Positions 10,137 to 61,313 of a stretch of DNA of 64,000 nucleotides are shown here, in pieces. This stretch comes from Macrostomum lignano. Lineage: Eukaryota. Each line of letters opens with the position of its first letter. Position 1 is the stretch's first letter. Position numbers and translations under genes: made by a program. The stretch spans positions 118,603 to 182,602 of the forward strand of contig NIVC01002334.1 in the NCBI GenBank assembly GCA_002269645.1, read 5' to 3'. The notes below the pieces were generated by a model. The model was given only the letters and a program-made list of their open reading frames with translations. It was not told where the DNA came from and searched no databases.

Positions 10137-10540
10137 TTACTGCCTTTGGGGCAGAAATTTTCCGAACGCCTCTAGCTCACAGATGGTCAGATATCCCAGG
10201 CTACTTTTCACCATGATCTCCTGTCCAACACCCTCGCATGGTAGCGCCTTGGAGCTGAACTCTTCGCCATTGCTATACCGACTGCACTCGCTTTTCTCGT
10301 CAATATAGATGGCAAAGTTGGTTAATCCGGATCGTCGATTGAGTCGGTTGTAAATTTTGACCATCATGAATTGCACCTGATAATCGGTGGCCGCCCTCCA
10401 CCAGCCGGCTCTTGCACTGTCCACAAAAGCGCAGGTCTGCAGGTGAGTAGACGGATCTTCCAGGCGGTCATCAATAGCTTTTTCGCACGTGTGGGTGTAG
10501 TATGATGAGCTCTGTTTGCAGCGCGTCAGAGGCAGCTTGT
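10137..10540 (-). CDS. F-type lectin-like domain exon 14 of 14 (terminal; carries the stop codon)
   Basis: Acceptor CTCAG|AC AAG (phase 1). KLPLTRCKQSS...TCAFVDSARAGWW...VKIYNRLNRRSGL...CELEAFG, then TAA. No phase-1 GT donor found. Confidence 0.82.
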
Positions 10541-11004
10541 CTGAGGGTTCCCGAATTAAAAATTCCTTTTAAATTATAAGCATAAAAGCATCAATTGCAT
10601 TCCTGAGTTGACAGAATTAACCAACACTGAATCAATTCGGATCGGAGAATTTTCGGACACTTCTCAATATACTTGTCGAAAACAGCTTATCACATAGAAT
10701 TATTACAATTTCCGTGATTTTTTTATTAGAGGCAGGGGGGCTGTGTGCACCCTGGCGCACTTTAAGCGACATAGGCACACAACCGGCGAGAGGCATTGCT
10801 GCCCATTCCGCCGACTCCCCTGAGCAGGGCATACAAGCGCGCGGATACGTACGCAGGCACACACTCACACAGGAGTGTACAGCGGCCCTAACTTTATATT
10901 ATCGTTAGGCATGTACACTTCACTGCGCCTTCGGGGTTGGCTCTCAAGGCTGTAAATTGCACGAGCAGAGCCAAGCCGAGATTCCAATTCAGCCCCAAAT
11001 TAAT

Positions 11005-11079
11005 GTGACTGCACTTGGAATCGAGCCTGGGTCGCTGGCACACCAGAGCCTGCGCTAGACCGCTGGGCTACGGCCCTCC
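11005..11079 (-). ncRNA. tRNA-derived (SINE-head-like) pseudo-tRNA
   Basis: The minus strand has A-box-like TAGCCCAGCGG and B-box-like GGCTCGATTCC at tRNA-like spacing. No convincing anticodon arm. Confidence 0.35.
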
Positions 11080-11171
11080 TTAATTTCCGTGATAATACGT
11101 AAACATTAATTTTGAATTTTAGATTAATTAGGTTTCAAAGACGCGTTTGCACTAAACTGATTTGTTCTTAC

Positions 11172-11570
11172 CTTCGGCAGGCAAAGACTCTCCGTAGGCT
11201 TCAAACTCGCAGAGTGTCAAGTATGGAATATTGCTTTTCACCATGATCTCCTGTCCATATCCATCGCATCTCAGAGTTTTCGACAAAAAGTATTCCGAAT
11301 CTGTGTACCGATTGCACACTTTCTTCTCGTCAATGATCACTTCTAAGTTTGTCCGTCTAGACTGACGTTCCTTTGTCAATCGGTTGTAGATTTTGACGTA
11401 GATAAACCGTACGGGCTTTTCAGTTTGAGCCCTCCACCAGGAGTTGTCTGCATTGGTCAGCGCGCAGTGGTCCAGCGTGTCGCCTAATTTATTATCGTAA
11501 GCTCTATCGCAGAGAGAAGTCGAACTGAACTTATCCGAGCCCTGGCTGCAGTTGGTCAGCTTGAGCTTCT
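11172..11570 (-). CDS. F-type lectin-like domain exon 13 of 14
   Basis: CAG|AG AAG acceptor, GAA G|GTAAGA donor, 399 nt, phase 1-1. HCALTNADNSWW...IYNRL...CEFEAYG. Confidence 0.88.
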
Positions 11571-11814
11571 CTGCTGAATGGTTTTTGTTGGAGTGGAGTA
11601 GATTTTATTGAAGACGAACGGATATTTCTATCAGTTATTAAGAATACCCTATGACTCATAATAGTAAAAACTGTACTTACACATTTGAGTTTCTAAATAA
11701 TATTAAATAATTGCTTCCACATGCTAACACACGAGTTTTGTCCAAATAGGAAGTTAAAGGTGTAATCGATTATAATAAATCCTTGTGCTCTTAATCAATA
11801 TCGTACGTACTCAC

Positions 11815-12219
11815 TTTCCATCGGAAGAGTTTCTCCAAACGCCTCAATCTCGCAGATCGCCAGCTGCTTGGGCAGGTGACTTCTCACCATGATCTCCTGT
11901 CCGGATGCGTCGCATCGTAGAGTCTTGGAGGCGAATTGTGTCGAATCTTTGTACCGATTGCACACGTTCGTTTCGTCTATTACAACTTCGAAGTCGGTCA
12001 GTGTGTCTCGATGCGTGAGCCGATTGTAGATTTTGATGTACATGAAGCGCACAGGATGCTCAGTTTTCGCCTTCCACCAGGTGTTATCATTATTGGTGAT
12101 GGCGCAGTTCTGAATGGGATTATCTGGATCGTCTAGCTTATCATCGTAAGCTTTGTCGCAAGAGTGCTTGATGCCGTCTAAGCTCGAGCCTTGGCTACAG
12201 TTGACCAACTTGAGTTTTT
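11815..12219 (-). CDS. F-type lectin-like domain exon 12 of 14
   Basis: GACAG|AA AAA acceptor, GAA A|GTGAGT donor, 405 nt, phase 1-1. NCAITNNDNTWW...IYNRLTHRDTL...CEIEAFG. Confidence 0.9.
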
Positions 12220-12705
12220 CTGTCAAGATAAAAAAGGAATAAGTAAACTGTTTGCTTTATTACAAGGTTTAGGTTTTTTGTTTGTGATTTTATAGTCATC
12301 CAAGTTCATTTTTGTCGCGATTTTTCAGTTAAAGGCAGAACGGGCAGATGTAGACGAGCTTTGATTGGTAACCTAGCCATCAAATCATTCTCATGATTGC
12401 ATTTTCTAACCGACTGTATTATTTCTTAGGTCACGAACTCAGGCCTTAAACCTGTCAATTTAAAAAGACATGAGAGTTTTGTCGCTCTTGTTTGCATCAT
12501 AGACTAATAAAAAACCTTAGCTGTCTCGATAAATTGTACATGTACCAATAAAAAAACTATGCAATAGAACACAATTCAAAATTATTCGCACCGTAGAAGG
12601 GTGTAATGCTCTGCGTTTGAAGAGGACATTACGCTTGTACATTTCAATTTCTTTGCTAGTATACCTGAGTTTTAGAAGCATTGTAGAAGAAATGCAAGGG
12701 AGCAC

Positions 12706-13639
<934 letters not shown>

Positions 13640-13775: not shown

Positions 13776-14177
13776 CATGACGTATTGATTTTTGTCCGTA
13801 AGCCTCGAACTCGCAGATCGTCAGCTGAGGCATGTGACTTCTCACCATGATCTCATGTCCGTATCCGTCGCATCGCAGAGTCTTGGAGGCGAATTGTGTC
13901 GAATTTTTGTACCGGTTGCACACGTTCCTCTCGTCTATTACAACTTCGAAGTCGGTCAGTGTGTCTCGATGCGTGAGCCGATTGTAGATTTTGACGTACA
14001 CGAACCGCACGGGATATTCAGTCTTCGCCTTCCACCAGGTGTTGTCAATATTGGTGATGGCGCAGTTCTGAATGGGGTTATCTGGATCGTCCAGCTTATC
14101 ATCGTAAGCCTTATCGCACAAGTTTTCCGTGCTGTTCAAGTTCGAGCCCTGTCTGCAGCCGATAAGCTGGATTTTAT
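13776..14177 (-). CDS. F-type lectin-like domain exon 11 of 14
   Basis: GCCAG|AT AAA acceptor, CAT G|GTGAGG donor, 402 nt, phase 1-1. Close paralog of exon 11815-12219. Confidence 0.9.
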
Positions 14178-15405: not shown

Positions 15406-15810
15406 CCTCAGTAGGTACCGTTTCCCCGAAAGCCTCGAACTCGCAGATCGTCAGCTTCGGCAGGCGACTTTTCACCATGATCTCCTGGCCATATCCGTCG
15501 CATCGCATGGTTTTATAGGCAAAGAAAAATATACTCTGGTACCGATTGCACACGTTCTTCTCGTCAATGATCACATCGAAGTTGGTCAGTCTATACCTCA
15601 GAGTCGCGCGGTTGTAGATTACAACGTACTTAAACCGCACGGGACGCTCGGTTTTCGCTTTCCACCAGGTGTTTTCTTTGCCCGTGTGAGCGCAGTTTAT
15701 AACAGAACCCGGCTCACTTGTATCCAGCTTATCATCGTAAGCCTTGTTGCACAAGTGATTTGTGCCATCCCAGTTCGAGCCCTGGCTGCAGTTGACGAAC
15801 TTTAACTTTT
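15406..15810 (-). CDS. F-type lectin-like domain exon 10 of 14
   Basis: TTTTCAG|AA AAG acceptor, GAG G|GTGAGT donor, 405 nt, phase 1-1. NCAHTGKENTWW...IYNRATLRYRL retains H/R/R. Confidence 0.9.
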
Positions 15811-16053
15811 CTGAAAAAAAATATTTGTATTTTAAACAAGGGGTGCTTTTAGTTCGTAATATGATATAAGGCACTATTTTTCGTTGGTACTCGTATACTT
15901 TTCCTTGTGTAGTCAATTTGTGTTGAAACTTTTTCCGCTACTTTTGCTAAACGCATAGCGTTTTCATTGCTTTAAAAAAACCTATAAACTGGCCCAGAAA
16001 CAGCTCAAGTTGCATGTCTATCGCTTTATCAGAAGAAATCAGCTTCGACTCAC

Positions 16054-16458
16054 CGTCTGTAGGCACGGTCAGTCCATAAGCCTCGAACTCACAGACGGTC
16101 AGCTGTCCAGCAGCGGTGCTTATCTTGAGTTCCTGTCCGTATCCGTCGCATCGCAGAATTTTAGAAGCAAATCTATCCGTAGGTTTGTATCGAGTGCACA
16201 CTTTTTTCCCGTCGATAAGAACATCAAAGTCAGTCTGCTTGTTTTTAAAGTCGAGCCGGTCGTAAAGTTTGACGTACGTGAACCGCACAGGGTGCTCAGT
16301 TCGCGCCCACCAATAGGTATTCGAATGGTTGCGACTGGTGATTGCGCAGTGGTCTCCCAATTCTTTTCCATACTCTAACCGATTATCGATAGCTTTATCG
16401 CAGGTAGTACTATTATCCCGATCTGTATTCTGTTCGCAGCTGACAAGCTTCAGTTTTT
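16054..16458 (-). CDS. F-type lectin-like domain exon 9 of 14
   Basis: AACAG|AA AAA acceptor, GAC G|GTGAGT donor, 405 nt, phase 1-1. HCAITSRNHSNTYWW...LYDRL...CEFEAYG. Confidence 0.88.
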
Positions 16459-17682: not shown

Positions 17683-18081
17683 TCTCCGAAGGTACAGTCT
17701 CTCCGTAAGCCTCGAACTCGCAGATCGTCAAATTGGGCCGGTTACTTCTCACCATGATCTTCTGACCGTACGCGTCGCATTTTAGAATCTTTGAAGCAAA
17801 TCCCGTCGAATTTTTGTACCGATTGCACACTGTCTTATCGTCGATGATCACTTCGAAGTCGGTCAGCCCTTCTCGTTGTTTGAGCTGGTTGTAGATTTTG
17901 ACATAGTTGAACCGCACGGGTTGCTGAGTTTTTGCCATCCACCAAGTTTTGCGATCGCCGGTTCGTGCACAGTTCAATAGAGAGCCATCTTCATTTGTCT
18001 TACCGTCGTAGGCCTTATAACACATGTTCTTTCCGCCAGGCAAGCTTGAGCCCTGGCGACAACCATGAAGCTTCAGTTTTT
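17683..18081 (-). CDS. F-type lectin-like domain exon 8 of 14
   Basis: GCCAG|AA AAA acceptor, GAG A|GTGAGT donor, 399 nt, phase 1-1. NCARTGDRKTWW...IYNQLKQREGL. Confidence 0.9.
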
Positions 18082-20737: not shown

Positions 20738-21106
20738 GCAGCACTTTTCCGTAAGCCTCGAACTCGCAGATCGCCAGCTTGGGCAGGTGACTCCTCACCA
20801 TGATCTCATGTCCGTATCCGCCGCAAGGCAGTATTTTTGTATCGAATTCTGTTGAATCTTTGTACCGATTGCAAACATTTTCGTCGATTAGAACTTCAAA
20901 GTTGGTCAGACTGTCCCGTTGTTTAGCACGGCTGAAGATTTTGACGAACATGAACCACACAGGTTGTGAAGTTTGTGCCTTCCACCAGGTGTTGTCACTA
21001 TTGGTGATTGCACACTGGGCTAGAGAACTATCGAAAGCTTCATGGCAAAGGTGTTTAGCGTCATCAGCGTTCGAGCCCTGACTGCAGCCGTCAAACTTGA
21101 GTTTAG
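20738..21106 (-). CDS. F-type lectin-like domain exon 7 of 14 (shortest; loop deletion)
   Basis: ACCAG|CT AAA acceptor, CTG C|GTAAGT donor, 369 nt, phase 1-1. QCAITNSDNTWW...IFSRAKQRDSL. Confidence 0.88.
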
Positions 21107-22198: not shown

Positions 22199-25100
22199 TA
22201 GCATTTTGTAAGCTAGTAAAGACTACGAGCAAGCAATTTAATCCAAGATAGCAAAAACACATGCATTTTGAGCCTCACTGCTAGTTGTCTATGGTAAAAA
22301 GTGTGTCTATGCCATTCCACTCTCAGTTTTTACTACATGTCAGACGAATGTGACCAAGCCAGCACCATTTTTGAAGACATCGACAGAATCGCTGCCGAAG
22401 ATGCCGGAGCGCCACCTGTGCAATATGCTAAGATTAGCGACAAAAAGCATAGATTGATAATCGACGGTATCGACAGAGGCGATAACAACAGAAGCATTGC
22501 CAGCTTAGCACGCAGGCAAGAATTCGCACAGGCTGCATCGCTGGGGAGGTGATTATGTAACTTACTGAAGTCTAAACGTACATGTAAAAACTTTTCTGTC
22601 GTGTGTTTCTTTATATGCAGGTTTCGTTAAGTGAACTTTTTTGCTGAACCTTGTTCTACGTCGTAACTTTTTCATATGGAGCTTCCTGGTTGGTTTCGTT
22701 GGAGGCATGCATGAAATAAATGGAAAGGCCGAGCAAGAAGTGCTTAAATCATGGACTTCTATACTTAGCATCTGGACTGGAAGCGAAAAAATTCTCGCAA
22801 AAAAAGTTACTACATGAGGCCAATTGTTTCCATAGATATGCATTTATCAAAAACTGCTGCGGCTTATATCGAATACAACTAAACTCACTTTCTTCATTTG
22901 ACTCTGCATAATGAAAGAATATCCTTCGTTATGGTGAATAAGTGTTCGGCATTCGGCTGCAGGAGTGGCTTCGCTAATAGTTCGACACCAAACAGGACTG
23001 TGACGTTTCATTGTTATCCACTTAACAAGCCGAGTCTACTGAAAAATGGAACAAGGCGAATCCGAGGAAGGACTTTGAACCCACCAAGTACTCTCGCATC
23101 TGCTCACTGCATTTCACATCTGAGGACTTCGTTGAGTCAACACAAGACAACAATTTCACTCGCAAAGCGAAGAAAGGCCAGCTGGCTAAGCGTTATCTGA
23201 GACAAGATGCGGTGCCAACTATTTTTCCAAACGCACCATCATATCTTTCCTCTGTCCGCCCAGCAGCTCGGATCACATGCACTGCGACATCATCTGCGCG
23301 TATGGAGGCGGAAAACAGGCGCCTGGATGATCAGATTTCCGACTTCTTTGCCACTGATTCAATTATCGATTGCTCGCCACGAAAAATTCAAGAACTGCTA
23401 GATTCTGAGGGGACGAGGCCAGATGGGTTTCAAACTGCAATTTGCAACGAGTTCCTGTGCATCTTCATGCTGGAGCAGAAGCATGTCTGCCAGGTAGCGT
23501 GCTCCATCTGCATTGCACCGAATCACAAGGTCTCCATTGGTCTGAATGGCTCAGCGCTGTCGCAAGGCAAGGTCGTAGAATTGGTTGGCACGGATGGAAA
23601 TGTTTCTTCCATTAGTGAAGTCTTGAATTTCAGTGAAAAGTCTTGAATTTCTTCACACATTAGTGTCAAGAATTTGAAAGAAGATCTTGAACGCGTTGAG
23701 CAGGAGCAGTTGTCGGATGTTAATGACAAGCATTTTTCTCACTTCGTGGACATGGCCCAAAACAATCTGACAAGTGCTCTAGAGCAGAAGGAAGACAGGT
23801 CGATTACCTTTATCCGAGAACAGCTGCAGTTGAGCAGTAAACCAAAGGGCTCAAGGAGATATTCTCAACATTTGATAGTATTGTGCTACATGATTTATTC
23901 ACTAAGTGCTGCAGCCTATGGACTTCTACGTGATCAAGGGATTCTCTGCCTGCCATCAGAGCGAACTCTGAGGTCAGTTACTCGAAAAGTTGGAAAAGCT
24001 GGATTGGATTCTCAAAGTTACCTTCGGAGGCGAGCGTCCAAGCTGACCCAGATTGAGCGAGTTGTGGTGCTAATCATTGATGAAATCTATGTGGCCAATC
24101 GAGTTGAGTACTGTGCTGCAGGTCAAGTGAGTGGAGTGGACAATGACGGAGTGGTTGCTTCCACCTACTATTGCTTTTTGATAAAGGCAATTGCCGGCAA
24201 GTACAAGGACATGGTGGCTATGTTTCCTGTAGCAAAGCTGACAGCACAGAAGCTCAGTCACTGGTTTCAAGATGTCATGAAGTTGCTGCGCAGCCTGCAA
24301 CTCTCCGTCATCGCAATATCTGTTGACAATGCACCAGTGAACCGAAAATTCGTCATCGATTTTCTGTGCGACGGAGAGTTAAAAGAGTCATTTTTTGACA
24401 AGGTCACAGGTCAGCCCATCTTTGTTGTGATCGATCCTGTGCACACCATCAAGAATGTCTACAACAACTGGCAGTCGCGGAAATTATTCCGCTGCCCAGC
24501 ATTTCCACCTGTTTTGACAGAAGCCTGAGACGCCGACTTTGGTCATATCGCTGAACTGTTCCATTCTGAGGTCAACAAGCCGTTGAGACTTGCACACAAG
24601 CTCAACCCTGCGGTGCTGAAGCCTAAGAACATAGAGAAATCATCAGTGAAGCTGGCTGTGGCAGTATTCTGTGAGTCAACACGAGACGCACTGTGTTACT
24701 ATACTGCACATGAGAACAGGAACTGGGGTGGCACTGCAAGATTTGTCAGTGCGGTTCTGAAGCTCTGGAAAGTTCTCAACGTCAAGACAGCATCCAAGGG
24801 ACTTCGTAAGCGTGACATTGCGCAGGATCCAGTGCGCTCCTCACTTGACTGGAAGCTGCAATCTCTTGACGAGTTCAGCAGTTTTTTTGAGGTAAGTCTT
24901 TAAAATGCGTTTAATTATTTTTTAACTATCGGTCCTAATTCCTATGCACCAACTAATTTCAGTTATGGCAGTCTTCTGGAGTGTGCGGCTTGACGAAGGA
25001 GACTTTTCTAGCATGCCGCATTACCTGCCGTTCCATCGCTGCCTGTGCGAGACATCTGCTGGATCACGAAGGATTCTCCTATGTTCTTCTAGGCTCACTT

Positions 25101-26316
25101 CAATCTGACAGCATTGAACGCCGATTTGGTTGGCTCCGTCAGATGTCAGGAGCGAACTACTTCATTTCCGCAAGACAGCGAACTGAAAACAGTCGCAAAA
25201 TTGCTGCCATCAGTCTGCTGAAGTTTTCTCAGCTGTCACTGACCGATATAGACAATGCTATAGAGTCAATCTGCGCCAAGGATCAGCACATAATGGAACT
25301 GGCGTTAGAGTTTGCAAGCAAGATGGAGATGAACATCCAGCCATTGAGATCGGACTGCACCGTTGTCTACTATGTAAGTGGAGCAGTTGCTAAGAAATTT
25401 GTGCAAAGGAAGCGAGGATGCGCGTCTTGCAGCGAACTTCTGCTCGACTCTGACAACCTACAGCCCCTTGAGAGTGATGAAGAAATCCAGACCACGGCAA
25501 TCGCCTTCTAGGAGGAGATCAATCGGGGTGGCCTGTCCAAGCCGTCGATGGTCGCCTTTAGGCTGGCCACACACTGCTGGCAGGTGTTCGAAGAGATTCG
25601 GCAGAGCAATGAACTGCGCAGAAGGCTGCTGACCGCGCCCAACCAGATGCTGTCAGATGATGTGCACGGCTGGCCATGATGTAAAAGAGGGAATTATTTG
25701 CGCATTTTTCAACTGCATGATGAAAAATTTGATCAAAGATATTTCGGTTGGTGGAGCTGGAGCCAAAAGTAAGCGAAAGTCGACTAAACTTTCCAGTGGC
25801 AGTTCATACTAACAACTTTGATTTGTGTCGATGATGCTTTTCAATCTGTCTGACACGCCACTGACCTGCTTTCGTGTCACATCTAAGCTGTTCAGACCTT
25901 TGTTAATACTGCCTACTCTCGTTTCTTACCGATTTGTTCAAGTACATATGCACACATGCATCTTTTTCTCTGCACACTGCTAATATATATAACAACATGT
26001 ATATAATTCGTTCCCAATCACAAGTAGTCCTGCCTAAGTATAAAATGAATCAGTTTGAATTTGCGTCGTTGCCTCGCGATAAAAAAATAAATACATTTCT
26101 GATGGCCTCATGTGGTAACGCGAATTTTTTCGCTTCCAGTCCAGATGCTGAGTATAGAAGTCCATGGCTTAAATGAGTGCTCCAAGGATTAAATTGCCTG
26201 CCGTTTTGACACACTTTTTACCATAGACAACTAGCAGTGAGACTCAAAATGCATGTGTTTTTGCTATTTTGGATTAAATTGCTTGCTCGTAGGCTCTACT
26301 AGCTTGCAAAATGCTA
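22199..26316 (+). mobile_element. THAP-domain P-element/THAP9-type transposon with ~110-bp TIRs; transposase disrupted
   Basis: The TIR TAGCATTTTG(T/C)AAGCTAGTA...TTGTCTATGGTAAAAAGTGTGTC is present at both ends, flanked by TA. THAP zinc finger MVNKCSAFGC...FHCYP...RICSLHF...AVPTIF starts at 22931 (frameshift ~23045). Catalytic-core motifs VLIIDEIYV, SVDNAPVNRK, DPVHTIKNVYNNW, LQSDSIERRFGWLRQMSG. Intron 24892-24962. In-frame stops at 23644, 24526 and 25509. Confidence 0.88.
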
Positions 26317-27047: not shown

Positions 27048-27049
<2 letters not shown>

Positions 27050-44552: not shown

Positions 44553-44945
44553 GCAAAGGTTTTCCGTAAGCCTCGAACTCGCAGATCGTCAGCTGAGGCA
44601 GGTAACTTTTCACCATGATCTCCTGGCCGTATCCGTCGCATTTCAGAGTCTTATAGGCGAATTGTGTCGAATCTTTGTACCGATTGCACACATTCTGATC
44701 GTCGATGATCACTTCGAAGTCTGTCAGTCTCTCCCTCAGCATGTCGCGGTTGTAGATTTTGACGTACATGAAAAGCATGGGATTATCAGTCTTCGCCTTC
44801 CACCAGGTGTTTTGTTTGCCCGTGTGAGCGCAGTTTAATAGATACCCTATATCTGAATCCAGTTTGCCATCATAAGCCTTGTTGCACATGTAATTTGTGT
44901 CATCCTGGTTCGAGCCCTGGCTGCAGCTGACGAATTTGAATTTTG
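44553..44945 (-). CDS. F-type lectin-like domain exon 3 of 14
   Basis: ATGCAG|CA AAA acceptor, TTG C|GTGAGT donor, 393 nt, phase 1-1. NCAHTGKQNTWW...IYNRDMLRERL. Confidence 0.9.
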
Positions 44946-45184
44946 CTGCATTGAATGGAGAGTGGCAGTTGAAATTTCAGATGTACACCGAAACACAAAT
45001 ATATTTACGGTATGAATAGCTGTTCGACGGACCAATCAGAAACTTTGTATGGGTGTGTATGTCTACTCGTATATGCTAAAATAGCACGTTTACTGCGAAT
45101 GGATAGTCACTGCTGCTAGTAAACACTATTAACAAGTTGAGCGGTTTTTTGGCAGTTAATCTCTAGTAAAACTGCATTTTTCAG

Positions 45185-45721
45185 GGGGGTCTTTCTCGAA
45201 AGCAACTTACAATCGACCATAGACGTAAGTTGGGTAAGCTACACTTACGGGTTGCTCGAAGGGCTCGCAAGTTAGCTATGCGTAAGATTGATCGCAACTT
45301 TACGAGTTCGTAACTTTGCGCAAAAGACTGTTTCTCGAAGCGTTCGTATGTCTATGGTCTTTCGTAAGGTTGATCTTGATTCTTAACCCTACGACAGCTC
45401 GGTATCAGTCGTAAGACGCACTTAAGCACTAATCGCATAGTACGTGGTGAAGCTTTAGTCAAGCCAAGTCAAGTTAAACTTTATCGAAGGTGAGTCTTTC
45501 TCGAAAGCAACTTACGATAGACTAAAGTAAAGATATTTGCAGATTTATGACCATAGACATGCAACTTTTCGTTTCAGATACGACTTACGAACAGCGTAAG
45601 CCACGCAAAGTCTAAGTGAGTTTTGAGAAAGCGTCTTACGAGCAAACTTACGCTACACGTAAATTTCTTTCTTACGATCTAACTTACCATAGAACTTACG
45701 TGAGTTTCGAGAAACACCCCC
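45185..45721. mobile_element. PIF/Harbinger-like MITE (duplicate at 52266-52802)
   Basis: TIR GGGGGT(C/G)TTTCTCGAAA at both ends, apparent 3-bp TSD CAG, and internal CTTACG/CGTAAG repeats. Confidence 0.65.
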
Positions 45722-46205
45722 CAGACCGAAATTTTTATGAAATGCTACCTAAGACTGGCAAGCAAGCAAAGTTCTTACGAAATTTCTGCCGCTCTAGTCT
45801 CCCTGGCTTATTTTTTCTGGAATGATTTTTGTGGAATTTTCTGGTCATTGTTAAAACCCTAATTTATCGCTATGCAGAAATGCATTATACAGAAATCCAT
45901 TTAAAAGAAACGACTGTCTTTGTCGGGGGTCGGTGCTGGTTTGAGGTGGTAGGCCTCACCCACCCACTGTGTTCTAAGGGCTACCTTGTGAACCGCTGGT
46001 GCCTATTTCGCTGCGGTTGATTAAATTCTTAATAATATATAATTTATAAAATAATAATATAATGTAACGATATATACAGATTTTTTTCGGCAGCTAATTG
46101 CTGCCGTTAAAGAATCTGTCTATGTCGTTATTGTGCTTTTTTGAATGAAACTGATTATTAACGATAGATTTTATACCTTTCGGTAGTATATTCAGCGATG
46201 CAGGA

Positions 46206-47100
46206 TGTTATTACAACTCTGGGATACATGTATTGTTATGTCTTCAGGTTACTTAAAGTCTTCAATATACTTAAGGCATTAATTATTAGTGCTGATATCC
46301 TAGCAGACGTTTCCGCGGCTCCAAGGTTCTTAGTCTTGCTCTTATTTCTCTTTATTCCACATTCTCACAGCGGGATTTTAACCCAAGCCTGTTTTGCAGC
46401 TTCATTTAGTCCATAGATAAAACAAAACGCGTCAAACTGCATATGCAATTAAAATAATATCAATATTATAGTCGCGTCATATCATCCCTCTTTCCTTCAA
46501 GATGATTGGTACCTGTCCAATGCTCTCCGGATCCGCACTGGGTACCTGGACTCCGAAGGTTGAATTGAACTTGGTTCTTCATCGTCCTGGATAGGCTTGT
46601 GGGTTTCAGCCTCGGCTCTGTCTCTGACATGGTTCCGGTGCACCACCAGATCTCGTCCTCTATGGTCCTGTACTCGTCTCAGCTGTTCTCCAACCGCTTC
46701 TTGAAGTACTCCCTCCCTCCACTCCTTGTTGAAGGGATCTTGGACCCAAACAGGACTGTGAATTTGATCTGTTTTCTTGTGCTGGAACGACCGACGATGT
46801 AGCAGTGACAGTCTAGTATTAAACTGGCGCCCAAACATTTCTCGACACGGAGCGACACCGTTGGCTCTTGGGCAGACTCGAATGGCGTACAAAGTTTGTT
46901 GCATTCGAACTTCCGGGTCTGGATCGTTTAGCTGTTTTAGCTTGGTCTTCAGCCTTTTCACTGCTACCTCGACTACTCCATTCGAAGCGGGAAGGTATCT
47001 GGGTGACTTGAGGTGTAGCACTCCCATTCGCTTCAACCAGGCTTCTGTTGAAGCTTGGAAACAGAAGCATTCAGTGTGATGTCATTCTCTTGCAGCCTTT
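46206..47100 (-). mobile_element. Truncated Gypsy-type LTR retrotransposon (integrase C-terminus, PPT, 3' LTR); duplicate at ~53287-54181
   Basis: ORF 46497-47036 has SPRYLPASNGVVEVAVKRLK...REMFGRQFNTRL. On the minus strand the PPT GAAGGAAAGAGGGA abuts a TG...CA LTR (46206-46484). Confidence 0.75.
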
Positions 47101-47468
47101 TAAGTATTTTTTGCGTCTTGTCGGTGTAGTGTGAGCATCTTTTGCGTGTATTTTGTTAGTTAATTGATTGTATCAGTTTATATATTGTTAATTATTATTT
47201 TGCTTCAATTTAGTCACGCGGTCTAATGTACTTTTTTTCTTGTTAGTTAAAATCTAAATTTGTAAACCAGTTAGAAGTCAGACGCCATTTCGTGACTCAG
47301 CGGAGGGTTGAGTTTTTCTGCGAACCCCAGCTTTGCGCGGCCAGCCAATCAGAACCGGCCTGGACTCTGGCACCCGGCAAAATCCAAGTCTACCCGGCGC
47401 CGCGGGCACAGTGCAAATCGGCTTAGCGAGCGGCCGGCCAGACGACCACCACCCAGCTTGAGGGGGGT

Positions 47469-48578
47469 TGTGAGGGTTTGACTCTGACTATATATGAAAG
47501 TGTGTTTGGCAATCAGATCTCACTTCTGTTTTTCCGTCCCCGGTTTTGATTTTTGTCCCGGCTTTCCGGCCGCTTGCCATTGTTTTGGTTCGCGCTTTGA
47601 GGCGCTTGAGTTCATCACCCCCGGTCCATATTTTTGTCCCCTGCCCGACCGCTTCAGTCTTGTAGCGTAACGTATACGGCAGATTCCTGTCTGAAGTCGT
47701 CGCTATCAAGCGCGGTTAGATAGAGACTGTCGGATTTGACCAAGTACGTGGCCTCGACCCAGAGGGCCTCGATCAGTGTCACACTGAAGGGCAGTGCTGA
47801 TAGAATTTAGTCAGTGCTCCGTTGAACGGTCAATTCGGCAGGGCTCTCGTTTGAGTGTAGGTTCTGGTTTAGGCCAGGGGTTAGGAGTCTTCTCCGTTGG
47901 TCGTGTTCGGTTTTTCTTCTTCAAGCTGAGATCTGCTTGCCATTGCGTAACTAAGTTATTATTAATCGTTTGTCTCGATATCATTTTCCGCTATTATCAG
48001 TTCGAAATTATCTGCGCCGCGAATTGCATTGAAGCTTGTAACTTGAAGTAATCAAATTAAATCGTCTAGCCAATTATCAGTCTGTATCATATAGGATTAT
48101 CACTCTCTAAATCTATTCGGCTCGTGTTCATCTGCATTCTTCCTTTTCTTGTACCGTACTGTGACTATTGGAGAAAGACTGGTAGGACTCGCCGACCGGC
48201 GATAGGCGATTAGCTATAAAATCTCCGAACGCTCCAAGTAGGTTTGTCTAGGGCCTAAATAATTGCTTATCGTGCATGCAATATATATTCATATTGTATT
48301 CATCACATCGGCTAAATTTTCCCGGGTTTTTTTCACAGACTAGAATGTCGTCATTCTTACAGCATACTAAAACATACTACGCACTACACCTTTTTCCATT
48401 CTATTTTGGCAAACATCTAGAACATCAACATCTAGAACATACTACGCGCTAAAGTCTCTGTTTTCGTGCGGCCATTCAGCGGCAAATGGAATCCCCGTCC
48501 GTCGATCGCCAGGTAAACATCATTAGCGGAGAATCATTCAAGCGTTGTAATGGAGCTCTTGTCGGAACTCATTTGTGA
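47469..48578 (+). mobile_element. Probable LTR of a second retroelement (copy at 54192 truncated at 54895)
   Basis: Purine tract AGGGGGGT immediately precedes TGTGAGGG at 47469 in both copies. The 3' end is uncertain (TGTGACA ~48578). Confidence 0.4.
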
Positions 48579-51402: not shown

Positions 51403-51633
51403 GGACGCAACACTCGCGTATCGTGTAATTTTCGATCCGGCCAAGTCACGATCAAGCACACACATCACCCCCACTTGCACTGTCAACTGACCAAATATAT
51501 TGAGTAGACAAGGCAAAACAGTGGCCACCATTTTCCGCGCGCAAGCGTAGACTTTACATAAATAGTCATAAATATTTGTTACTACATCGACTATTCCTTT
51601 TTTCTATAATAGCTAAAACAAAGTCGAACTCAC

Positions 51634-52026
51634 GCAAAGGTTTTCCGTAAGCCTCGAACTCGCAGATCGTCAGCTGAGGCAGGTAACTTTTCACCATGAT
51701 CTCATGTCCGTATCCGTCGCATTTCAGAGTCTTATAGGCGAATTGTGTCGAATCTTTGTACCGATTGCACACATTCTTATCGTCGATGATCACTTCGAAG
51801 TCTGTCAGTCTCTCCCTCAGCATGTCGCGGTTGTAGATTTTGACGTACATGAAGAGCATGGGATTATCAGTCTTCGCCTTCCACCAGGTGTTTTGTTTGC
51901 CCGTGTGAGCGCAGTTTAATAGATACCCTATATCTGAATCCAGTTTGCCATCATAAGCCTTGTTGCACATGTAATTTGTGTCATCCTGGTTCGAGCCCTG
52001 GCTGCAGCTGACGAATTTGAATTTTG
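51634..52026 (-). CDS. F-type lectin-like domain exon 2 of 14 (recent duplicate of 44553-44945)
   Basis: Same splice sites, 393 nt, phase 1-1. Differs from its twin at DDKN/DDQN and YGHE/YGQE. Confidence 0.88.
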
Positions 52027-54895
52027 CTGCATTGAATGGAGAGTGGTAGTTGAAATTTCAGATGTACACCGAAACACAAATATATTTACGGTATGAATAG
52101 CTGTTCGACGGACCAATCAGAAACTTTGTATGGGTGTGTATGTCTACTCGTATATGCTAAAATAGCACGTTTACTGCGAATGGATAGTCACTGCTGCTAG
52201 TAAACACTATTAACAAGTTGAGCGGTTTTTTGGCAGTTAATCTCTAGTAAAACTGCATTTTTCAGGGGGGTCTTTCTCGAAAGCAACTTACAATCGACCA
52301 TAGACGTAAGTTGGGTAAGCTACACTTACGGGTTGCTCGAAGGGCTCGCAAGTTAGCTATGCGTAAGATTGATCGCAACTTTACGAGTTCGTAACTTTGC
52401 GCAAAAGACTGTTTCTCGAAGCGTTCGTATGTCTATGGTCTTTCGTAAGGTTGATCTTGATTCTTAACCCTACGACAGCTCGGTATCAGTCGTAAGACGC
52501 ACTTAAGCACTAATCGCATAGTACGTGGTGAAGCTTTAGTCAAGCCAAGTCAAGTTAAACTTTATCGAAGGTGAGTCTTTCTCGAAAGCAACTTACGATA
52601 GACTAAAGTAAAGATATTTGCAGATTTATGACCATAGACATGCAACTTTTCGTTTCAGATACGACTTACGAACAGCGTAAGCCACGCAAAGTCTAAGTGA
52701 GTTTTGAGAAAGCGTCTTACGAGCAAACTTACGCTACACGTAAATTTCTTTCTTACGATCTAACTTACCATAGAACTTACGTGAGTTTCGAGAAACACCC
52801 CCCAGACCGAAATTTTTATGAAATGCTACCTAAGACTGGCAAGCAAGCAAAGTTCTTACGAAATTTCTGCCGCTCTAGTCTCCCTGGCTTATTTTTTCTG
52901 GAATGATTTTTGTGGAATTTTCTGGTCATTGTTAAAACCCTAATTTATCGCTATGCAGAAATGCATTATACAGAAATCCATTTAAAAGAAACGACTGTCT
53001 TTGTCGGGGGTCGGTGCTGGTTTGAGGTGGTAGGCCTCACCCACCCACTGTGTTCTAAGGGCTACCTTGTGAACCGCTGGTGCCTATTTCGCTGCGGTTG
53101 ATTAAATTCTTAATAATATATAATTTATAAAATAATAATATAATGTAACGATATATACAGATTTTTTTCGGCAGCTAATTGCTGCCGTTAAAGAATCTGT
53201 CTATGTCGTTATTGTGCTTTTTTGAATGAAACTGATTATTAACGATAGATTTTATACCTTTCGGTAGTATATTCAGCGATGCAGGATGTTATTACAACTC
53301 TGGGATACATGTATTGTTATGTCTTCAGGTTACTTAAAGTCTTCAATATACTTAAGGCATTAATTATTAGTGCTGATATCCTAGCAGACGTTTCCGCGGC
53401 TCCAAGGTTCTTAGTCTTGCTCTTATTTCTCTTTATTCCACATTCTCACAGCGGGATTTTAACCCAAGCCTGTTTTGCAGCTTCATTTAGTCCATAGATA
53501 AAACAAAACGCGTCAAACTGCATATGCAATTAAAATAATATCAATATTATAGTCGCGTCATATCATCCCTCTTTCCTTCAAGATGATTGGTACCTGTCCA
53601 ATGCTCTCCGGATCCGCACTGGGTACCTGGACTCCGAAGGTTGAATTGAACTTGGTTCTTCATCGTCCTGGATAGGCTTGTGGGTTTCAGCCTCGGCTCT
53701 GTCTCTGACATGGTTCCGGTGCACCACCAGATCTCGTCCTCTATGGTCCTGTACTCGTCTCAGCTGTTCTCCAACCGCTTCTTGAAGTACTCCCTCCCTC
53801 CACTCCTTGTTGAAGGGATCTTGGACCCAAACAGGACTGTGAATTTGATCTGTTTTCTTGTGCTGGAACGACCGACGATGTAGCAGTGACAGTCTAGTAT
53901 TAAACTGGCGCCCAAACATTTCTCGACACGGAGCGACACCGTTGGCTCTTGGGCAGACTCGAATGGCGTACAAAGTTTGTTGCATTCGAACTTCCGGGTC
54001 TGGATCGTTTAGCTGTTTTAGCTTGGTCTTCAGCCTTTTCACTGCTACCTCGACTACTCCATTCGAAGCGGGAAGGTATCTGGGTGACTTGAGGTGTAGC
54101 ACTCCCATTCGCTTCAACCAGGCTTCTGTTGAAGCTTGGAAACAGAAGCATTCAGTGTGATGTCATTCTCTTGCAGCCTTTCTTACAGAGGGGGGTTGTG
54201 AGGGTTTGACTCTGACTATATATGAAAGTGTGTTTGGCAATCAGATCTCACTTCTGTTTTTCCGTCCCCGGTTTTGATTTTTGTCCCGGCTTTCCGGCCG
54301 CTTGCCATTGTTTTGGTTCGCGCTTTGAGGCGCTTGAGTTCATCACCCCCGGTCCATATTTTTGTCCCCTGCCCGACTGCTTCAGTCTTGTAGCGTAACG
54401 TATGCGGCAGATTCCTGTCTGAAGTCGTCGCTATCAAGCGCGGTTAGATAGAGACTGTCGGATTTGACCAAGTACGTGGCCTCGACCCAGAGGGCCTCGA
54501 TCAGTGTCACACTGAAGGGCAGTGCTGATAGAATTTAGTCAGTGCTCCGTTGAACGGTCAATTCGGCAGGGCTCTCGTTTGAGTGTAGGTTCTGGTTTAG
54601 GCCAGGGGTTAGGAGTCTTCTCCGTTGGTCGTGTTCGGTTTTTCTTCTTCAAGCTGAGATCTGCTTGCCATTGCGTAACTAAGTTATTATTAATCGTTTG
54701 TCTCGATATCATTTTCCGCTATTATCAGTTCGAAATTATCTGCGCCGCGAATTGCATTGAAGCTTGTAACTTGAAGTAATCAAATTAAATCGTCTAGCCA
54801 ATTATCAGTCTGTATCATATAGGATTATCACTCTCTAAATCTATTCGGTTCGTGTTCATCTGCATTCTTCCTTTTCTTGTACCGTACTGTGACTA

Positions 54896-58543: not shown

Positions 58544-58939
58544 GTATCGGTTTTCCGAAAGCCTCGACCTCGCAGATCGTCAGCTGAGGCAGGCGACTTT
58601 TCACCATGATCTCCTGTCCGTATCCGACGCATGGCAGAGTCTTGTAGGCGAATTGCTCCGAATTCTTGTACCGATTGCACACCTTATTCTCATCGATGAT
58701 AATCACTTCGAAGTCGGTCAGTCTCTCCCTCAGAGTCGCGCGGTTGAAGATGCGGACGCGCTGAAACCGGACGAAATGCTCGGATTTCGCCTTCCACCAG
58801 GTGTTTTCGTTGCCCGTGTGAGCGCAGTTTAATAGACCCCCTGTATCTGTATCCAGTTTGCCATTATAAGCCTTGTTGCACAAGTGATTTGTGCCATCCC
58901 AGTTCGAGCCCTGGCTGCAGCTGACGAACTTGAGTTTTT
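58544..58939 (-). CDS. F-type lectin-like domain exon 1 of 14
   Basis: ATGCAG|AA AAA acceptor, ATA C|GTGAGT donor, 396 nt, phase 1-1. NCAHTGNENTWW...IFNRATLRERL. Confidence 0.9.
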
Positions 58940-59624
58940 CTGCATGGGTTGAGAGTGGCAGTTGAAATTTCAGATATTTTTTCTAGCGGCCGTTTTTTTC
59001 AGAAAAAAATTTCAGCAAATAATTTGACTCTTCCAGTTTGTTAGTTAAGATTCCCCAATATCGCAGCTTCTTAATAACTTTTTAATTCCAGGTGAAGCAA
59101 GTATGTCTTTTGTAAGTGCGTTCTTACGTTCGGTAAATTGTTTTTTTTCATGAAATACTACCTGATACCGGTGAGGATGCTAAGTTTTGGCAAAATTTCT
59201 GCTGCTTTTGCCTGTTTTGTGTACGCTCGCATTTCCAAGAAGAACTATTGTGGATTTCTCCGGTGACGGGAAGTCTTTGAGTGATTTTTAAGACTATTTG
59301 GTTCACCCGTAGAAGCCATCCTGCGCCTGTCACTCTGATTACAGTAGCGAACGGGATCACTCCTATAGCTTGAGGTAGCAATCTCGGACATGGTACTTCA
59401 ATACGCGTAGAATTCAAAAGTCAAGAATGTGATTTATTGTAAAGTTAGTGCTAAAGCATTAAAAACTGCCTAAGCCAGTTATGCATTTGCACCAAAAACC
59501 GGCCTCTAGTAGGCCTGGCACGATTTGCAACTTTGGCGTCCACCGTTTACTGTAGTTTTTTATGATGAGACTATGCATAGGAGTAAGCGAGCAGAAATCA
59601 ACAAATAGTAGGATGATATGATCT

Positions 59625-59825
59625 AAACCGCAACAACAACAAAAGCAACAACAACAACGACAACAACGGCAACAATAACAGCAGTAACAGCAACAGCAGC
59701 AACAACAACAATAACAGCAACGGCAGCAACAGCGACAACAGCAACAACAACAACAACAACAACAGCAACAATAACAACAATATCGGCAACGGCTACAACA
59801 ACGACAACAACGGCAACTACAACTT
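59625..59825. repeat. (CAA/CAG)n trinucleotide tract
   Basis: Degenerate CAA/CAG/CGA repeats. These explain the poly-C and poly-L pseudo-ORFs. Confidence 0.9.
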
Positions 59826-59899
59826 CCCGCAGCTTTTCCCGCAGCGAGGTTTCTCCGCTGAAGGTTTTCCCGCCGAGCTTTTCTCGCGGCCGCCGCCTG

Positions 59900-60925
59900 G
59901 ATGTCCAGGTTGCCGAACTCCAAGTTTCAAGAAATCAATCGTGCCCAAAGAGAAGCACTCCGTCTCATCTCTGCTCTCCCAAAGTTGGAGGTGGTTTATC
60001 GCGAGTCTCTATGTATACCAGCAGTCAGCGTCGAAGCCAAGCGGAAAGCCCTCATCGCGGTGGAGAAGGCCCTTAGAAAGCCAACTGGCGACCCATGGAG
60101 AGAGCTCTGCTAGCGCTGATCGGTACCGCAGCTCAAAGCCAACAAGGGCCCCCGAGAGCAAGCCCGCTCCGTGCTCAACCAACTCCTACCGATGCGACGC
60201 CTACAAAATGCCTAGGTCCGTCCCTCTCCGTGGGAGTTCCTGACTAACTCAGATTGCTTGCACCTCTTCCCGGAGCTTCTCCGATGCTACCTGAAAGAAG
60301 CGGCTGCGAGTGACCTGCTACTTCGCTACTTTAATGACATCGAGCAAGTTGTGGTTTTCTCTGGTATGACGGCAGCAGAAAGGTGGTGCAGCTCATTTGA
60401 GACTGAGCTCCGGGCTCTCAGCCTTGCTCTCGAGGACATCATCAACACGTGCCCACCCACCGCTGCCACTATCACTGACAGTCAGTCTGCTATTCGAGCA
60501 CTCCAGGCTGACCGACCCACGACCAAATTTCTCCTCGAGCAACTCAGGGACCTCGTTCGGCTCGTGGATAGGGAAGCCAAGAAAGACGCCGACCTGCCGC
60601 AACAACACGTTGCCGTTGACTGCCAGGAGATTTCTCCAGCGCTCCATAGCCTACAGGCCGCACCTCAAGGACGTCTATGCCAGTCCGATCACCTTCACCG
60701 GCGACACACGCCACCAGCAGGTTCTTATCGCCCCCCTATGCCTACTACAAGAAGCGCATCGGCCTTTCGGACTCTGAAATCTGCCGTCGCTGCGGAGGCG
60801 AGGTTCTATCTGGTAGTGCTGGTGGTGCGACTCCTCGGTGCCCTTAACTGGGTCTCAGCCTAAGGAGTCGCCATCCGAAGTCAACAACGGCAACCACAAC
60901 AACATTGACAACAACAACAACAATA
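59900..60925 (+). mobile_element. Degenerate LINE 3' part (RT C-terminus, RNase H, (CAA)n tail)
   Basis: QREALRLIS...EKALRKP (post-RT region) and FETELRALSLAL...TITDSQSAIRALQ (RNase H). CAA-rich tail at ~60885-60922. Confidence 0.68.
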
Positions 60926-61240
60926 AAGCCACGAGCGGCGCCACAGAGGGGAAGGTATCAGAGCGCAAGCCTTTGGGCCGCACTACTTAAAATTTCAGCT
61001 CCCAAGTCAGAGTCAGAACGGGGGCTTTTGCATTTCTGCGCGTCGTTCGCCCTTGGCTTCTCATTCAACCGACTAAAGACTTTTAAAGTCAAATTCAAGT
61101 AAAGGAAGCTTTACTTTTTTACTTATCGATATTTCTATTTCAGCTTAGCTTTACAACCTTTACTAATAAAAGAAAAGAGAGCATTGTGACTGACGTACTC
61201 TTGAAACGTAGCTGAGGTAATTCTATATTAAGATACTCAC

Positions 61241-61313
61241 CAGCATAAGTTCGTTCATTACCGTAGACCGCAAGGGCCACAGCAACGAGAAGCGACCCAA
61301 GCAATTTCGTCAT
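61241..61313 (-). CDS. First coding exon (signal peptide) of the tandem F-type lectin gene
   Basis: ATG at 61313 gives MTKLLGSLLVAVALAVYGNERTYA, then G|GTGAGT. This is a basic N-terminus, hydrophobic core and phase-1 donor matching all downstream cassettes. Too short to appear in the ORF track. Confidence 0.78.

Follow-up and report, generated by a model that had tools for sequence, protein, structure and literature searches.

In a six-frame listing of a 64,000-nucleotide stretch of DNA from the flatworm Macrostomum lignano (contig NIVC01002334.1; the whole stretch is called the window here), 14 domains each appear as a separate small open reading frame. This raises the question of whether they constitute independent genes or parts of a single one and, in the latter case, what kind of protein is encoded and where it might act. 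In our assessment, the region 10137-61313 (minus strand) is very probably a single protein-coding gene, transcribed in the prostate, for a secreted 14-domain F-type lectin with a putative seminal-fluid role.

The gene spans 51 kb on the minus strand and comprises 15 exons—a signal-peptide exon of 73 nt, followed by 14 domain exons, each uninterrupted. All internal domain exons except exon 5, i.e., twelve, are of phase 1-1 and divisible by three (369-405 nt). The features are listed below in the direction of transcription; “triad” denotes the His/Arg/Arg (H/R/R) fucose triad.

61438-61445, minus strand: candidate TATA-like box TATAAAAA, ~130 nt 5' of the ATG, suggested by its letters
61241-61313, minus strand: exon 1, ATG and signal peptide MTKLLGSLLVAVALAVYGNERTYA, 73 nt, phase-1 GTGAGT donor
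58544-58939, minus strand: exon 2 (396 nt, phase 1-1) for F-type lectin domain 1, which keeps the triad
51634-52026, minus strand: exon 3 (393 nt, phase 1-1) for F-type lectin domain 2, which keeps the triad
44553-44945, minus strand: exon 4 (393 nt, phase 1-1) for F-type lectin domain 3, which keeps the triad
43185-43576, minus strand: exon 5 (392 nt, out of frame here) for F-type lectin domain 4, with Gln in place of His
27868-28260, minus strand: exon 6 (393 nt, phase 1-1) for F-type lectin domain 5, which keeps the triad
26507-26902, minus strand: exon 7 (396 nt, phase 1-1) for F-type lectin domain 6, which keeps the triad
20738-21106, minus strand: exon 8 (369 nt, phase 1-1, donor GTAAGT) for F-type lectin domain 7, which has lost the triad (I/R/S)
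17683-18081, minus strand: exon 9 (399 nt, phase 1-1) for F-type lectin domain 8, which has lost the triad (R/Q/G)
16054-16458, minus strand: exon 10 (405 nt, phase 1-1) for F-type lectin domain 9, which has lost the triad (I/R/K) and, among the internal domains, diverges most
15406-15810, minus strand: exon 11 (405 nt, phase 1-1, preceded by a 243-nt intron) for F-type lectin domain 10, which keeps the triad
13776-14177, minus strand: exon 12 (402 nt, phase 1-1, donor GTGAGG) for F-type lectin domain 11, which has lost the triad (I/R/T)
11815-12219, minus strand: exon 13 (405 nt, phase 1-1) for F-type lectin domain 12, which has lost the triad (I/R/T)
11172-11573, minus strand: exon 14 (phase 1-1) for F-type lectin domain 13, CAGCAG tandem acceptor (upstream AG: 402 nt, ...METEKLKL..., as in the transcript-based model; downstream AG at 11570: 399 nt), GTAAGA donor, His lost (L/R/R)
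10137-10540, minus strand: exon 15 (acceptor in phase 1, no donor, TAA at 10137-10139) for F-type lectin domain 14, which has lost the triad (F/R/G)
10098-10103, minus strand: AATAAA polyadenylation signal, 34 nt past the stop

Searches with three domain queries (tblastn) returned exactly 14 domain copies, all on the minus strand, each covered by one HSP of ~122-132 codons without stops (E = 1e-30 to 1e-91). Upon splice-site inspection, an AG acceptor was found 1-2 nt ahead of the K-(L/F/I)-K codon in every domain exon, and a donor directly after the domain in 13 of the 14 (GTGAG in eleven, GTAAG in two). The longest intron measures 14.9 kb and the shortest ones 243 nt (15811-16053) and 244 nt (11571-11814); the latter is 241 nt long in the transcript-based annotation, which uses the upstream AG of the tandem acceptor. 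Between the preceding stop and the acceptor, no ATG lies in frame with any of the 14 domain exons, and within the window exon 1 is the sole leader-like sequence. The first-pass annotation had taken the 14 reading frames for exons of one gene behind a single signal-peptide exon; the splice sites, phases, lone leader, closing exon and two short introns that it described were all recovered, and transcript-derived coding sequences point the same way.

The GenBank coding sequences of this assembly were built from StringTie, TACO and de novo transcripts with TransDecoder (PMC5730564). On the window DNA, they include PAA58779.1, a partial model of 1084 aa that is encoded by exons 7-15 at 100% identity and starts at an internal Met in exon 7. 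The full 15-exon model, PAA57549.1 (1875 aa), derives from a colinear locus (L001, NIVC01002473.1) with exons 97-100% identical to those of the window, and matches the 15-exon splice product at every junction. Together with a further entry, PAA55666.1, and the UniProt names given to these proteins (FTP/fucolectin domain proteins, “FTP domain-containing protein”), they show that the gene family is already annotated, contrary to the earlier description of the system as previously unannotated. Further RNA-level support for the domain-exon junctions comes from an in situ hybridization (ISH) probe made from the de novo transcript RNA815_14112: its forward primer lies in exon 2, its reverse primer crosses the exon 3|4 junction, the pair has no mismatch on the spliced model and one on genomic DNA, and the predicted amplicon over exons 2, 3 and 4 (521 nt) equals the published probe length exactly. 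The RNA evidence supports one spliced mRNA, with the provisos that transcripts and probe are not assignable to one of the three loci of the assembly, as these are 97-99.9% identical, and that StringTie models over near-identical exons (3 and 4, 99% identical) may misstate the true isoform content.

The exon 1 product is identical to the N-terminus of PAA57549.1 and constitutes the sole strongly hydrophobic stretch of the protein; beyond it, the Kyte-Doolittle 19-residue mean reaches at most 0.96, with no transmembrane segment found. The product is thus predicted to be secreted and non-membrane, as had been proposed. In the intact copy, it would be a protein of ~214 kDa with 14 lectin domains joined by linkers of 1-6 residues.

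By profile and predicted fold, the domains are divergent F-type lectin (FTP) domains, which agrees with the family named at first pass. A profile of all 14 matched only F-type lectins in the PDB (best 3CQO, MsaFBP32, 6.9e-13; further 4GWI, 2J1R, 3LE0, 2J22 and 1K12), and the whole protein is above the Pfam thresholds for PF22633 and PF00754, while single domains are below the domain thresholds. An AlphaFold2 (AF2) model (pLDDT 77.9, pTM 0.75) has its best Foldseek matches in 2J1R, 1K12, 4GWJ and 3LE0 (TM 0.65-0.68). The predicted jelly-roll is common to the Anguilla anguilla agglutinin (1K12), streptococcal SpX-1 (2J1R) and lectinolysin (3LE0/4GWI), in which Cys50-Cys146 and Cys108-Cys124 disulfides correspond to the invariant flatworm pairs C38/C122 and C87/C103. 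However, those lectins are single domains or attached to toxins or enzymes, show 17-23% sequence identity to the flatworm domains, and possess the Cys82-Cys83 pair that the latter lack, whereas an N-terminal C7/C20 pair is extra in the flatworm.

Fucose binding, named at first pass as known for the family, is not assured: the triad is kept in 6 of the 14 domains only, and there with an altered spacing. It is possible, and we hold this tentatively, that the F-type fold here serves a non-fucose function, be it as a structural or adhesive matrix component of prostate secretion or with another ligand class. The strict H-X24-R-X-D-X4-R/K motif occurs in none of the 14 domains, the spacing being H-X25-R-X5-R with neither the Asp at R+2 nor the Cys-Cys pair, and His is missing in eight; the same fold binds phospholipid in the factor V C2 domain and other sugars in CBM32 (PMC5712786), and CBM32 structures are also among the Foldseek matches. 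Against this, the six triad-bearing domains keep all three basic positions and, in the region of the Ca2+ site, the conserved Asp and Glu, and the nearest relatives by sequence and structure are fucose binders throughout.

Exon 5 needs separate consideration. Its domain is stop-free, but its acceptor reads CAG|AAAAATCAAG compared with CAG|AAAAATTCAAG and CAG|CAAAATTCAGG in the two near-identical loci, i.e., it is one base short (A5T1 versus A5T2 in L002). Since exon 5 is therefore 392 nt long, full inclusion is frameshifted in this copy; the ~1870 aa anticipated for it hold at L001 (1875 aa) and not here, where skipping of exon 5 yields a 1743-aa ORF with 13 domains and a single terminal stop. 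The shortfall reflects either an assembly error, obligatory exon 5 skipping or a decaying copy. We consider it doubtful that the window copy is a duplicate without function, on its way to a unitary pseudogene, with the intact L001 supplying the protein. Apart from the frameshift, this would fit two insertions carried by this copy alone, a young 6.7-kb BEL/Pao element in intron 5 and a P-element-like one in intron 7, and a GenBank model at this locus that is merely a 1084-aa fragment. Redundancy is also expected from the extra large chromosomes of the DV1 line and its 180 Mb of blocks at least 95% identical (PMC5730564), and the Mlig_3_7 assembly does hold three near-identical copies of the gene, introns included. 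Yet all splice sites are intact, the 14 domain exons are otherwise without stops, and the defect amounts to one base of length in an A5T1/A5T2 run of a PacBio/Canu assembly polished with Pilon, which performs poorly in multi-copy regions. A protein from the ML2 assembly with the same intron read-through keeps the exon in frame (QKIKF), and skipping of the symmetrically flanked exon 5 restores an open frame.

The gene probably grew through successive tandem duplications of a domain exon that is symmetric (1-1), together with short intron flanks. The latest event would be the ~7.1-kb tandem duplication whose two copies carry exons 3 and 4 (98% aa identical). Old domain pairs have a dN/dS of 0.2-0.4, and the young 5' domains a higher one of 0.5-1.0. 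The latter values could also be cited for an unlikely scenario, in which the 13 internal symmetric exons are cassettes whose alternative inclusion generates a lectin repertoire varying in domain number and specificity rather than one 14-domain protein. All internal exons but exon 5 being phase 1-1, any subset of them stays in frame, and the sperm bindin of the oyster Crassostrea gigas, a male reproductive F-type lectin, comes with 1 to 5 domains by alternative splicing and recombination, its isoforms showing a comparable mix of kept and lost triads (PMC5712786). The sole full-length transcript-derived model, however, contains all 14 domain exons, exons 2, 3 and 4 are consecutive in the de novo transcript behind the ISH probe, and phase 1-1 symmetry, which duplicated exons for extracellular modules show as a general rule, is on its own no sign of alternative splicing. 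The reading as 14 independent single-domain lectin genes in tandem, with a separate promoter and start for each, is effectively refuted, for although the domains are listed as separate reading frames and some introns are roomy enough for promoters, there is one leader only, upstream in-frame ATGs are missing, 13 exons have consensus donors in the same phase instead of a stop, two introns measure merely 241-244 nt, and the junctions are crossed by coding sequences and the ISH primer.

The locus is thus a real multi-domain F-type lectin gene, ordinary in kind; what had been observed at first pass is confirmed, its interpretation in part. The statement that such lectins usually have fewer tandem domains is true of characterised members, with at most five (PMC5712786), but not of predicted proteins from Xenopus tropicalis and the gastropod Gigantopelta with 12 detected domains. 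Of these, X. tropicalis LOC100491211 (1911-2055 aa) is comparable in multiplicity to the flatworm's 14. Like the flatworm protein, MsaFBP32 of striped bass (3CQO) and the Xenopus fucolectins are secreted and composed of tandem F-type lectin domains only. In contrast, the canonical HX24RXDX4R motif and the Cys-Cys pair, both absent from the flatworm, are present in the vertebrate domains, an intron splits each domain of MsaFBP32 (PMC5712786) where the flatworm has one exon per domain, and the vertebrate proteins are serum/liver immune lectins, whereas the ISH record available for the flatworm gene indicates expression in a reproductive gland.

Oyster bindin is akin in being an invertebrate male-reproductive F-type lectin with tandem domains in one gene, with the triad kept in some repeats and lost in others, and with retroelements and microsatellites in its introns (PMC5712786). 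Its 1-5 repeats are each split by a recombining mid-domain intron, unlike the 14 single-exon repeats described here, and it is an acrosomal sperm protein for which alternative splicing and positive selection are documented, whereas the flatworm gene is, by the secondary record, expressed in the prostate gland.

The RNA815_14112 probe was scored “prostate” by Lengerer et al. 2018, as cited in Brand 2020 Table S11, and in that table it bears no Mlig-pro name. On this record, the gene would be transcribed in prostate gland cells of the male copulatory apparatus. Prostate ISH together with a signal peptide was used by Weber et al. 2018 to define putative seminal fluid proteins (PMC5977470), and the flatworm lectin shares both with the prostate-limited transcripts Mlig-pro1-76 of M. 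lignano (PMC5977470). The product is, hence, probably a seminal-fluid protein, judging from one ISH annotation in a secondary table. Exon 1 supplies the signal peptide and each of the 14 further exons one complete FTP domain, joined in phase 1. With the triad kept in six domains and replaced in eight, the chain probably mixes specificities or has non-binding spacer domains. Its most likely role would be to act in the seminal fluid as a multivalent glycan-binding protein that is passed to the partner's antrum along with the sperm, where it could cross-link or anchor glycoconjugates of sperm, epithelium or microbes.

The lectin gene occupies positions 10137-61313 on the minus strand of the window, where tblastn with three domain queries retrieves a domain of ~130 residues exactly 14 times, each copy on the minus strand and as a single stop-free alignment (E 1e-30 to 1e-91). 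An AG acceptor precedes the K-(L/F/I)-K codon by 1-2 nt in all 14 copies, while 13 are followed, 1, 7 or 16 nt past the domain, by a donor (GTGAG in 11, GTAAG in two). Of the 13 internal exons, twelve are phase 1-1, with lengths of 369-405 nt, and the introns range from 243 nt to 14.9 kb. The ends of the coding region are marked as follows.

Ends of the lectin coding region
61241-61313, minus strand: leader exon of 73 nt, beginning with ATG, encoding MTKLLGSLLVAVALAVYGNERTYA and ending in a phase-1 GTGAGT donor
10137-10139, minus strand: stop codon TAA of the 3'-most exon, with AATAAA 34 nt further downstream

The exon description of the first-pass annotation (acceptors, donors, phases, sole leader and the 243-nt intron) was re-read from the sequence and is accurate. 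At exon 14, the acceptor is a CAGCAG tandem, of which transcript-based models take the upstream AG (…METEKLKL…), so that the intron measures 241 nt instead of 244 nt. The contig underlying the partial GenBank model PAA58779.1 (BOX15_Mlig031901g1, 1084 aa), i.e., NIVC01002334.1 of the Macrostomum lignano assembly GCA_002269645.1, agrees with the window exon for exon, and the protein is encoded in the window at 100% identity. Upstream of the start codon, a TATAAAAA motif is located at 61438-61445 (minus strand, ~130 nt away), and the AG that lies 8 nt ahead of the ATG could be a candidate acceptor for spliced-leader trans-splicing. Neither Rfam nor a tRNA scan gave any hit in the window.

An alternative to one long gene, namely that each domain is transcribed from its own start with its own leader, had been named at the outset as one of the findings that would overturn the model. 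For all 14 domain exons, the stretch from the preceding stop to the acceptor is free of in-frame ATGs, and a search of the whole window for extra leaders or separate starts returned a single leader-like sequence, that at 61241-61313.

Two independent lines support the joining of the exons in one mRNA. The first is provided by the GenBank coding sequences of the assembly, which are transcript-derived (transcripts from StringTie, TACO and de novo assembly were split according to trans-splicing and poly(A) evidence, and TransDecoder called the open reading frames; PMC5730564). PAA57549.1 (1875 aa), from the colinear locus L001 on contig NIVC01002473.1, whose exons are 97-100% identical to those of the window, has the same leader and, at every junction, matches the 15-exon splice product; PAA58779.1 spans exons 7-15 of the window gene. 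The second line is an in-situ hybridization probe for the de novo transcript RNA815_14112, made with primers TACAAGAATTCGGAGCAATTCG and GGCAAAGGTTTTCCGTAAGC and 521 nt in length (Table S11, Brand et al. 2020). Its forward primer sits in exon 2 of the spliced model and its reverse primer straddles the exon 3|4 junction and fits the spliced sequence perfectly but genomic DNA with one mismatch; the product on the spliced model is exactly 521 nt, the genomic distance of the exons being 6.5 kb. Because the three loci (the window, L001 and L002, the latter on NIVC01002722.1) are 97-99.9% identical in introns as well as exons, this RNA evidence applies to the set of copies and is not attributable to the window copy specifically. 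A second probe entry, RNA815_471.4 (306 nt), was set aside, since its reverse primer fits exon 6 only with three edits while its forward primer fits exons 3/4; a chimeric short contig or an origin in another copy is the probable explanation.

Full inclusion of all exons had been expected to yield a product of ~1870 aa, which fails at this particular copy. Exon 5 (43185-43576) is 392 nt long and begins at CAG|AAAAATCAAG, compared with CAG|AAAAATTCAAG and CAG|CAAAATTCAGG at the two near-identical loci; the difference comes down to AAAAATC versus AAAAATTC, the latter with an extra T. Including the exon breaks the frame after domain 3, and skipping it leaves an open reading frame of 1743 aa with one terminal stop. 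GCA_002269645.1 was assembled from PacBio reads with Canu, polished with Pilon, and has 180 Mb in duplicated blocks with an identity of 95% or more (PMC5730564); in a protein of the older ML2 assembly, which shares the same intron read-through, exon 5 is in frame. Accordingly, the defect may be either an assembly indel or a real lesion.

With regard to domain identity, a profile built from the 14 domains matched F-type lectins as the sole hits among all PDB sequences, comprising MsaFBP32 (3CQO, 6.9e-13), lectinolysin (4GWI, 1.6e-5; 3LE0), SpX (2J1R, 2.1e-5; 2J22) and eel agglutinin (1K12, 0.22). The HMM search that the first-pass annotation had proposed as a check gave a divided answer: the whole protein lies above the Pfam thresholds for PF22633 (76.8 bits, cut-off 27.8) and PF00754, while on single domains all F5/8-type-C matches fall below threshold. 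Significant similarity to established F-type lectin domains, by which the family is delimited, is thereby present in the profile and the whole-protein Pfam results. Structure prediction, likewise proposed, bore out the fold. The AlphaFold2 model of domain 1 (input, the 14-sequence alignment) is all-beta, with a pLDDT of 77.9 and a pTM of 0.75, and has the jelly-roll beta-barrel of F-type lectins. In a Foldseek comparison with the PDB, F-type lectin domains make up the top nine and 11 of the 17 top matches (2J1R, 1K12, 4GWJ, 3LE0 and 3CQO, TM 0.61-0.68), the first four of these being the best (TM 0.65-0.68); CBM32 modules enter at rank 10, and both they and discoidin domains stand behind these four. 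Six cysteines are invariant across the domains: C38/C122 and C87/C103 are positioned as the eel agglutinin disulfides Cys50-Cys146 and Cys108-Cys124, C7/C20 form an additional pair, and the Cys-Cys pair of canonical F-type domains is absent. On the basis of sequence and predicted structure, the domains are filed as divergent F-type lectin domains, and we hold the gene model together with this assignment with high confidence.

The divergence extends to the binding site. The published fucose motif, H-X24-R-X-D-X4-(R/K) (PMC5712786), occurs in its strict form in none of the 14 domains. The His/Arg/Arg triad of the site is found at homologous columns in six (exons 2, 3, 4, 6, 7 and 11), as H-X25-R-X5-R and without Asp at R+2, and in the remaining eight the His is replaced (by Q, I, R, I, I, I, L and F). 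Deviant F-type domains are admitted in the family, such as those of Drosophila CG9095 and of some oyster bindin repeats (PMC5712786). The segment homologous to the cation motif h2DGx reads A-Y-D-G-K in six domains, A-Y-N-G-K in one and A-(Y/I/F)-D-(D/N/S)-x in seven; its Asp is nearly invariant, and x is Lys or Arg instead of a small polar residue. Fucose binding by the six triad-bearing domains is plausible.

Pairwise identity among the 14 domains runs from 41% to 98%. The younger, triad-bearing group consists of the 5' exons 2-7 together with exon 11, and exons 12 and 13 form a pair 80% identical. Among older duplicates, likeness reaches only ~30-100 nt into the flanking introns, as would be expected if symmetric domain exons underwent unequal crossing-over. 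The most recent event is a tandem duplication seen in all three loci. Transposons account for the long introns; they and the other repeats are listed below.

Duplications and repeats within the lectin gene
44368-48167 versus 51449-54895: tandem duplication of ~7.1 kb, 99.6-99.7% identical, with exons 4 and 3 inside
34230-40972, antisense to the lectin gene, intron 5: young BEL/Pao LTR retrotransposon with LTRs at 34230-34524 and 40678-40972 (295 nt, 99% identical)
34593-39968, plus strand: its intact gag-pol reading frame of 1791 aa (Peptidase_A17, RVT_1, integrase)
22898-25511, plus strand, intron 7: string of P-element-like reading frames
13010-13413: (CTGT)101
12702-12966: 16/31-nt repeats
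30914-31454: 22/66-nt satellite
32330-32632 and 40975-41353: 30-nt satellite, interrupted by the LTR element
59459-59923, intron 1: TGT/TGC-rich triplet tract

The BEL/Pao element was inserted in the 30-nt satellite; L002 lacks it at the homologous position. In intron 7, the reading frame 23674-24528 matches the TNP-like RNase H domain of P-element/THAP9-like transposases; the segment 22308-26142 aligns to neither L001 nor L002 and is thus probably an insertion private to the window copy. Both copies of the tandem duplication also carry a 179-aa open reading frame without a Pfam match (46497-47036 and 53578-54117).

Nei-Gojobori dN/dS values of 0.2-0.4 indicate purifying selection on the old domain pairs; within the young group, values of 0.5-1.0 may be a sign of either relaxed or diversifying selection. 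Placed on the predicted structure, the variable fraction of the young domains was 0.54 for loops against 0.47 for strands, with no clear clustering in loops. A comparison of the three loci was uninformative on selection, with introns as alike as exons.

The region is colinear in the three copies, including a flanking ankyrin gene, with flotillin present in L001 and L002, and these near-identical copies match the redundancy already known for the DV1 assembly, with its additional large chromosomes. Flanking the lectin gene, an ankyrin-repeat reading frame (2434-3321, plus strand) is probably the counterpart of the 1073-aa Ank gene that L002 has at the corresponding place. The minus strand at 5741-6601 holds the remains of a mariner-type transposase (Transposase_1, HTH_32). 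Just downstream of the lectin gene, an intronless 643-aa reading frame (6902-8833, plus strand) resembles the Mab-21 C-terminal domain below threshold (22.6 bits against a cut-off of 24.1) and may encode a Mab-21/cGAS-like nucleotidyltransferase-fold protein.

The probe whose primers fit exons 2-4 was scored 'prostate', according to a secondary listing (Table S11, Brand et al. 2020). Gene identifiers of the lectin are absent from the supplements of Grudniewska 2018 and of the 2026 aneuploidy paper, as is the probe identifier RNA815_14112 from those of Weber 2018. Candidate seminal-fluid proteins of M. lignano are recognized by prostate-limited expression and a secretion signal (PMC5977470); set against this definition of Weber et al. 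2018, the prostate score and a predicted hydrophobic leader are observed. The leader is the sole hydrophobic segment (the 19-residue Kyte-Doolittle maximum past it is 0.96), and the mature protein at an intact locus is ~214 kDa. Prostate gland cells would secrete the lectin, which would be passed on together with the sperm, and multivalent glycan binding might cross-link or anchor glycoconjugates of sperm or antrum, or agglutinate microbes. We lean slightly towards this putative role as a seminal-fluid lectin.

Among characterized proteins, fish and frog tandem F-type lectins and the oyster sperm bindin are the nearest relatives. These have at most five domains, compared with 14 in the M. lignano gene, and introns in mid-domain, while none lies inside the M. 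lignano domains; motif fidelity and tissue also set them apart. Bindin resembles the M. lignano lectin in mixing repeats with and without the triad and in its male reproductive expression (in M. lignano, by the prostate-scored probe). It could be argued that the lectin is a flatworm seminal-fluid counterpart of bindin, with three loci of 13 symmetric exons each and combinatorial inclusion; it would then deliver to the mate a diverse, sexually selected multivalent repertoire of triad-bearing and triad-less domains. The recombining mid-domain intron that characterizes bindin has no equivalent in the single uninterrupted domain exons of M. lignano, and all transcript models found (PAA57549.1 and the RNA815_14112 probe) show full inclusion. 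We regard this extension of the seminal-fluid reading as improbable.

An exhaustive profile search puts the wider family at 594 representative proteins; a word-indexed protein search had yielded only two clusters. The view that F-type lectins usually have fewer tandem domains is right for the characterized members; however, 12 domains were detected in the Xenopus tropicalis 'fucolectin LOC100491211' (1911-2055 aa) and in a Gigantopelta protein (2619 aa), and high multiplicity is, thus, not unique to the M. lignano gene. Paralogues at other M. lignano loci (P0010, P0011, P0015, P0016 and P0025), by their UniProt names, fuse the F-type domain to Kringle, WSC or Apple domains, which suggests a lineage-specific expansion of this divergent domain. 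Nor is the gene previously unannotated, as had been supposed: it is in GenBank and carries the UniProt name of an FTP/fucolectin domain protein. New here are the corrected full model of the locus, the exon 5 frameshift, the link between the lectin and a prostate marker, and the triad state of each domain. The gene is not a new kind of system; it is an uncharacterized F-type lectin, of interest mainly for flatworm reproduction and lectin evolution.

For lectin evolution, it is a textbook example of how domain exons are amplified: each domain has a single exon, in phase 1-1 (exon 5 of the window copy excepted), the duplication history is readable, and three recent genomic copies are set apart by young transposon insertions. 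For flatworm reproduction, a published, unnamed prostate in-situ marker of M. lignano is tied to a defined 14-domain F-type lectin, by which the field of seminal fluid and sexual conflict gains a concrete glycan-binding candidate; given that RNAi, transgenesis and mating assays exist for this species, the role of a multivalent reproductive lectin is directly testable.
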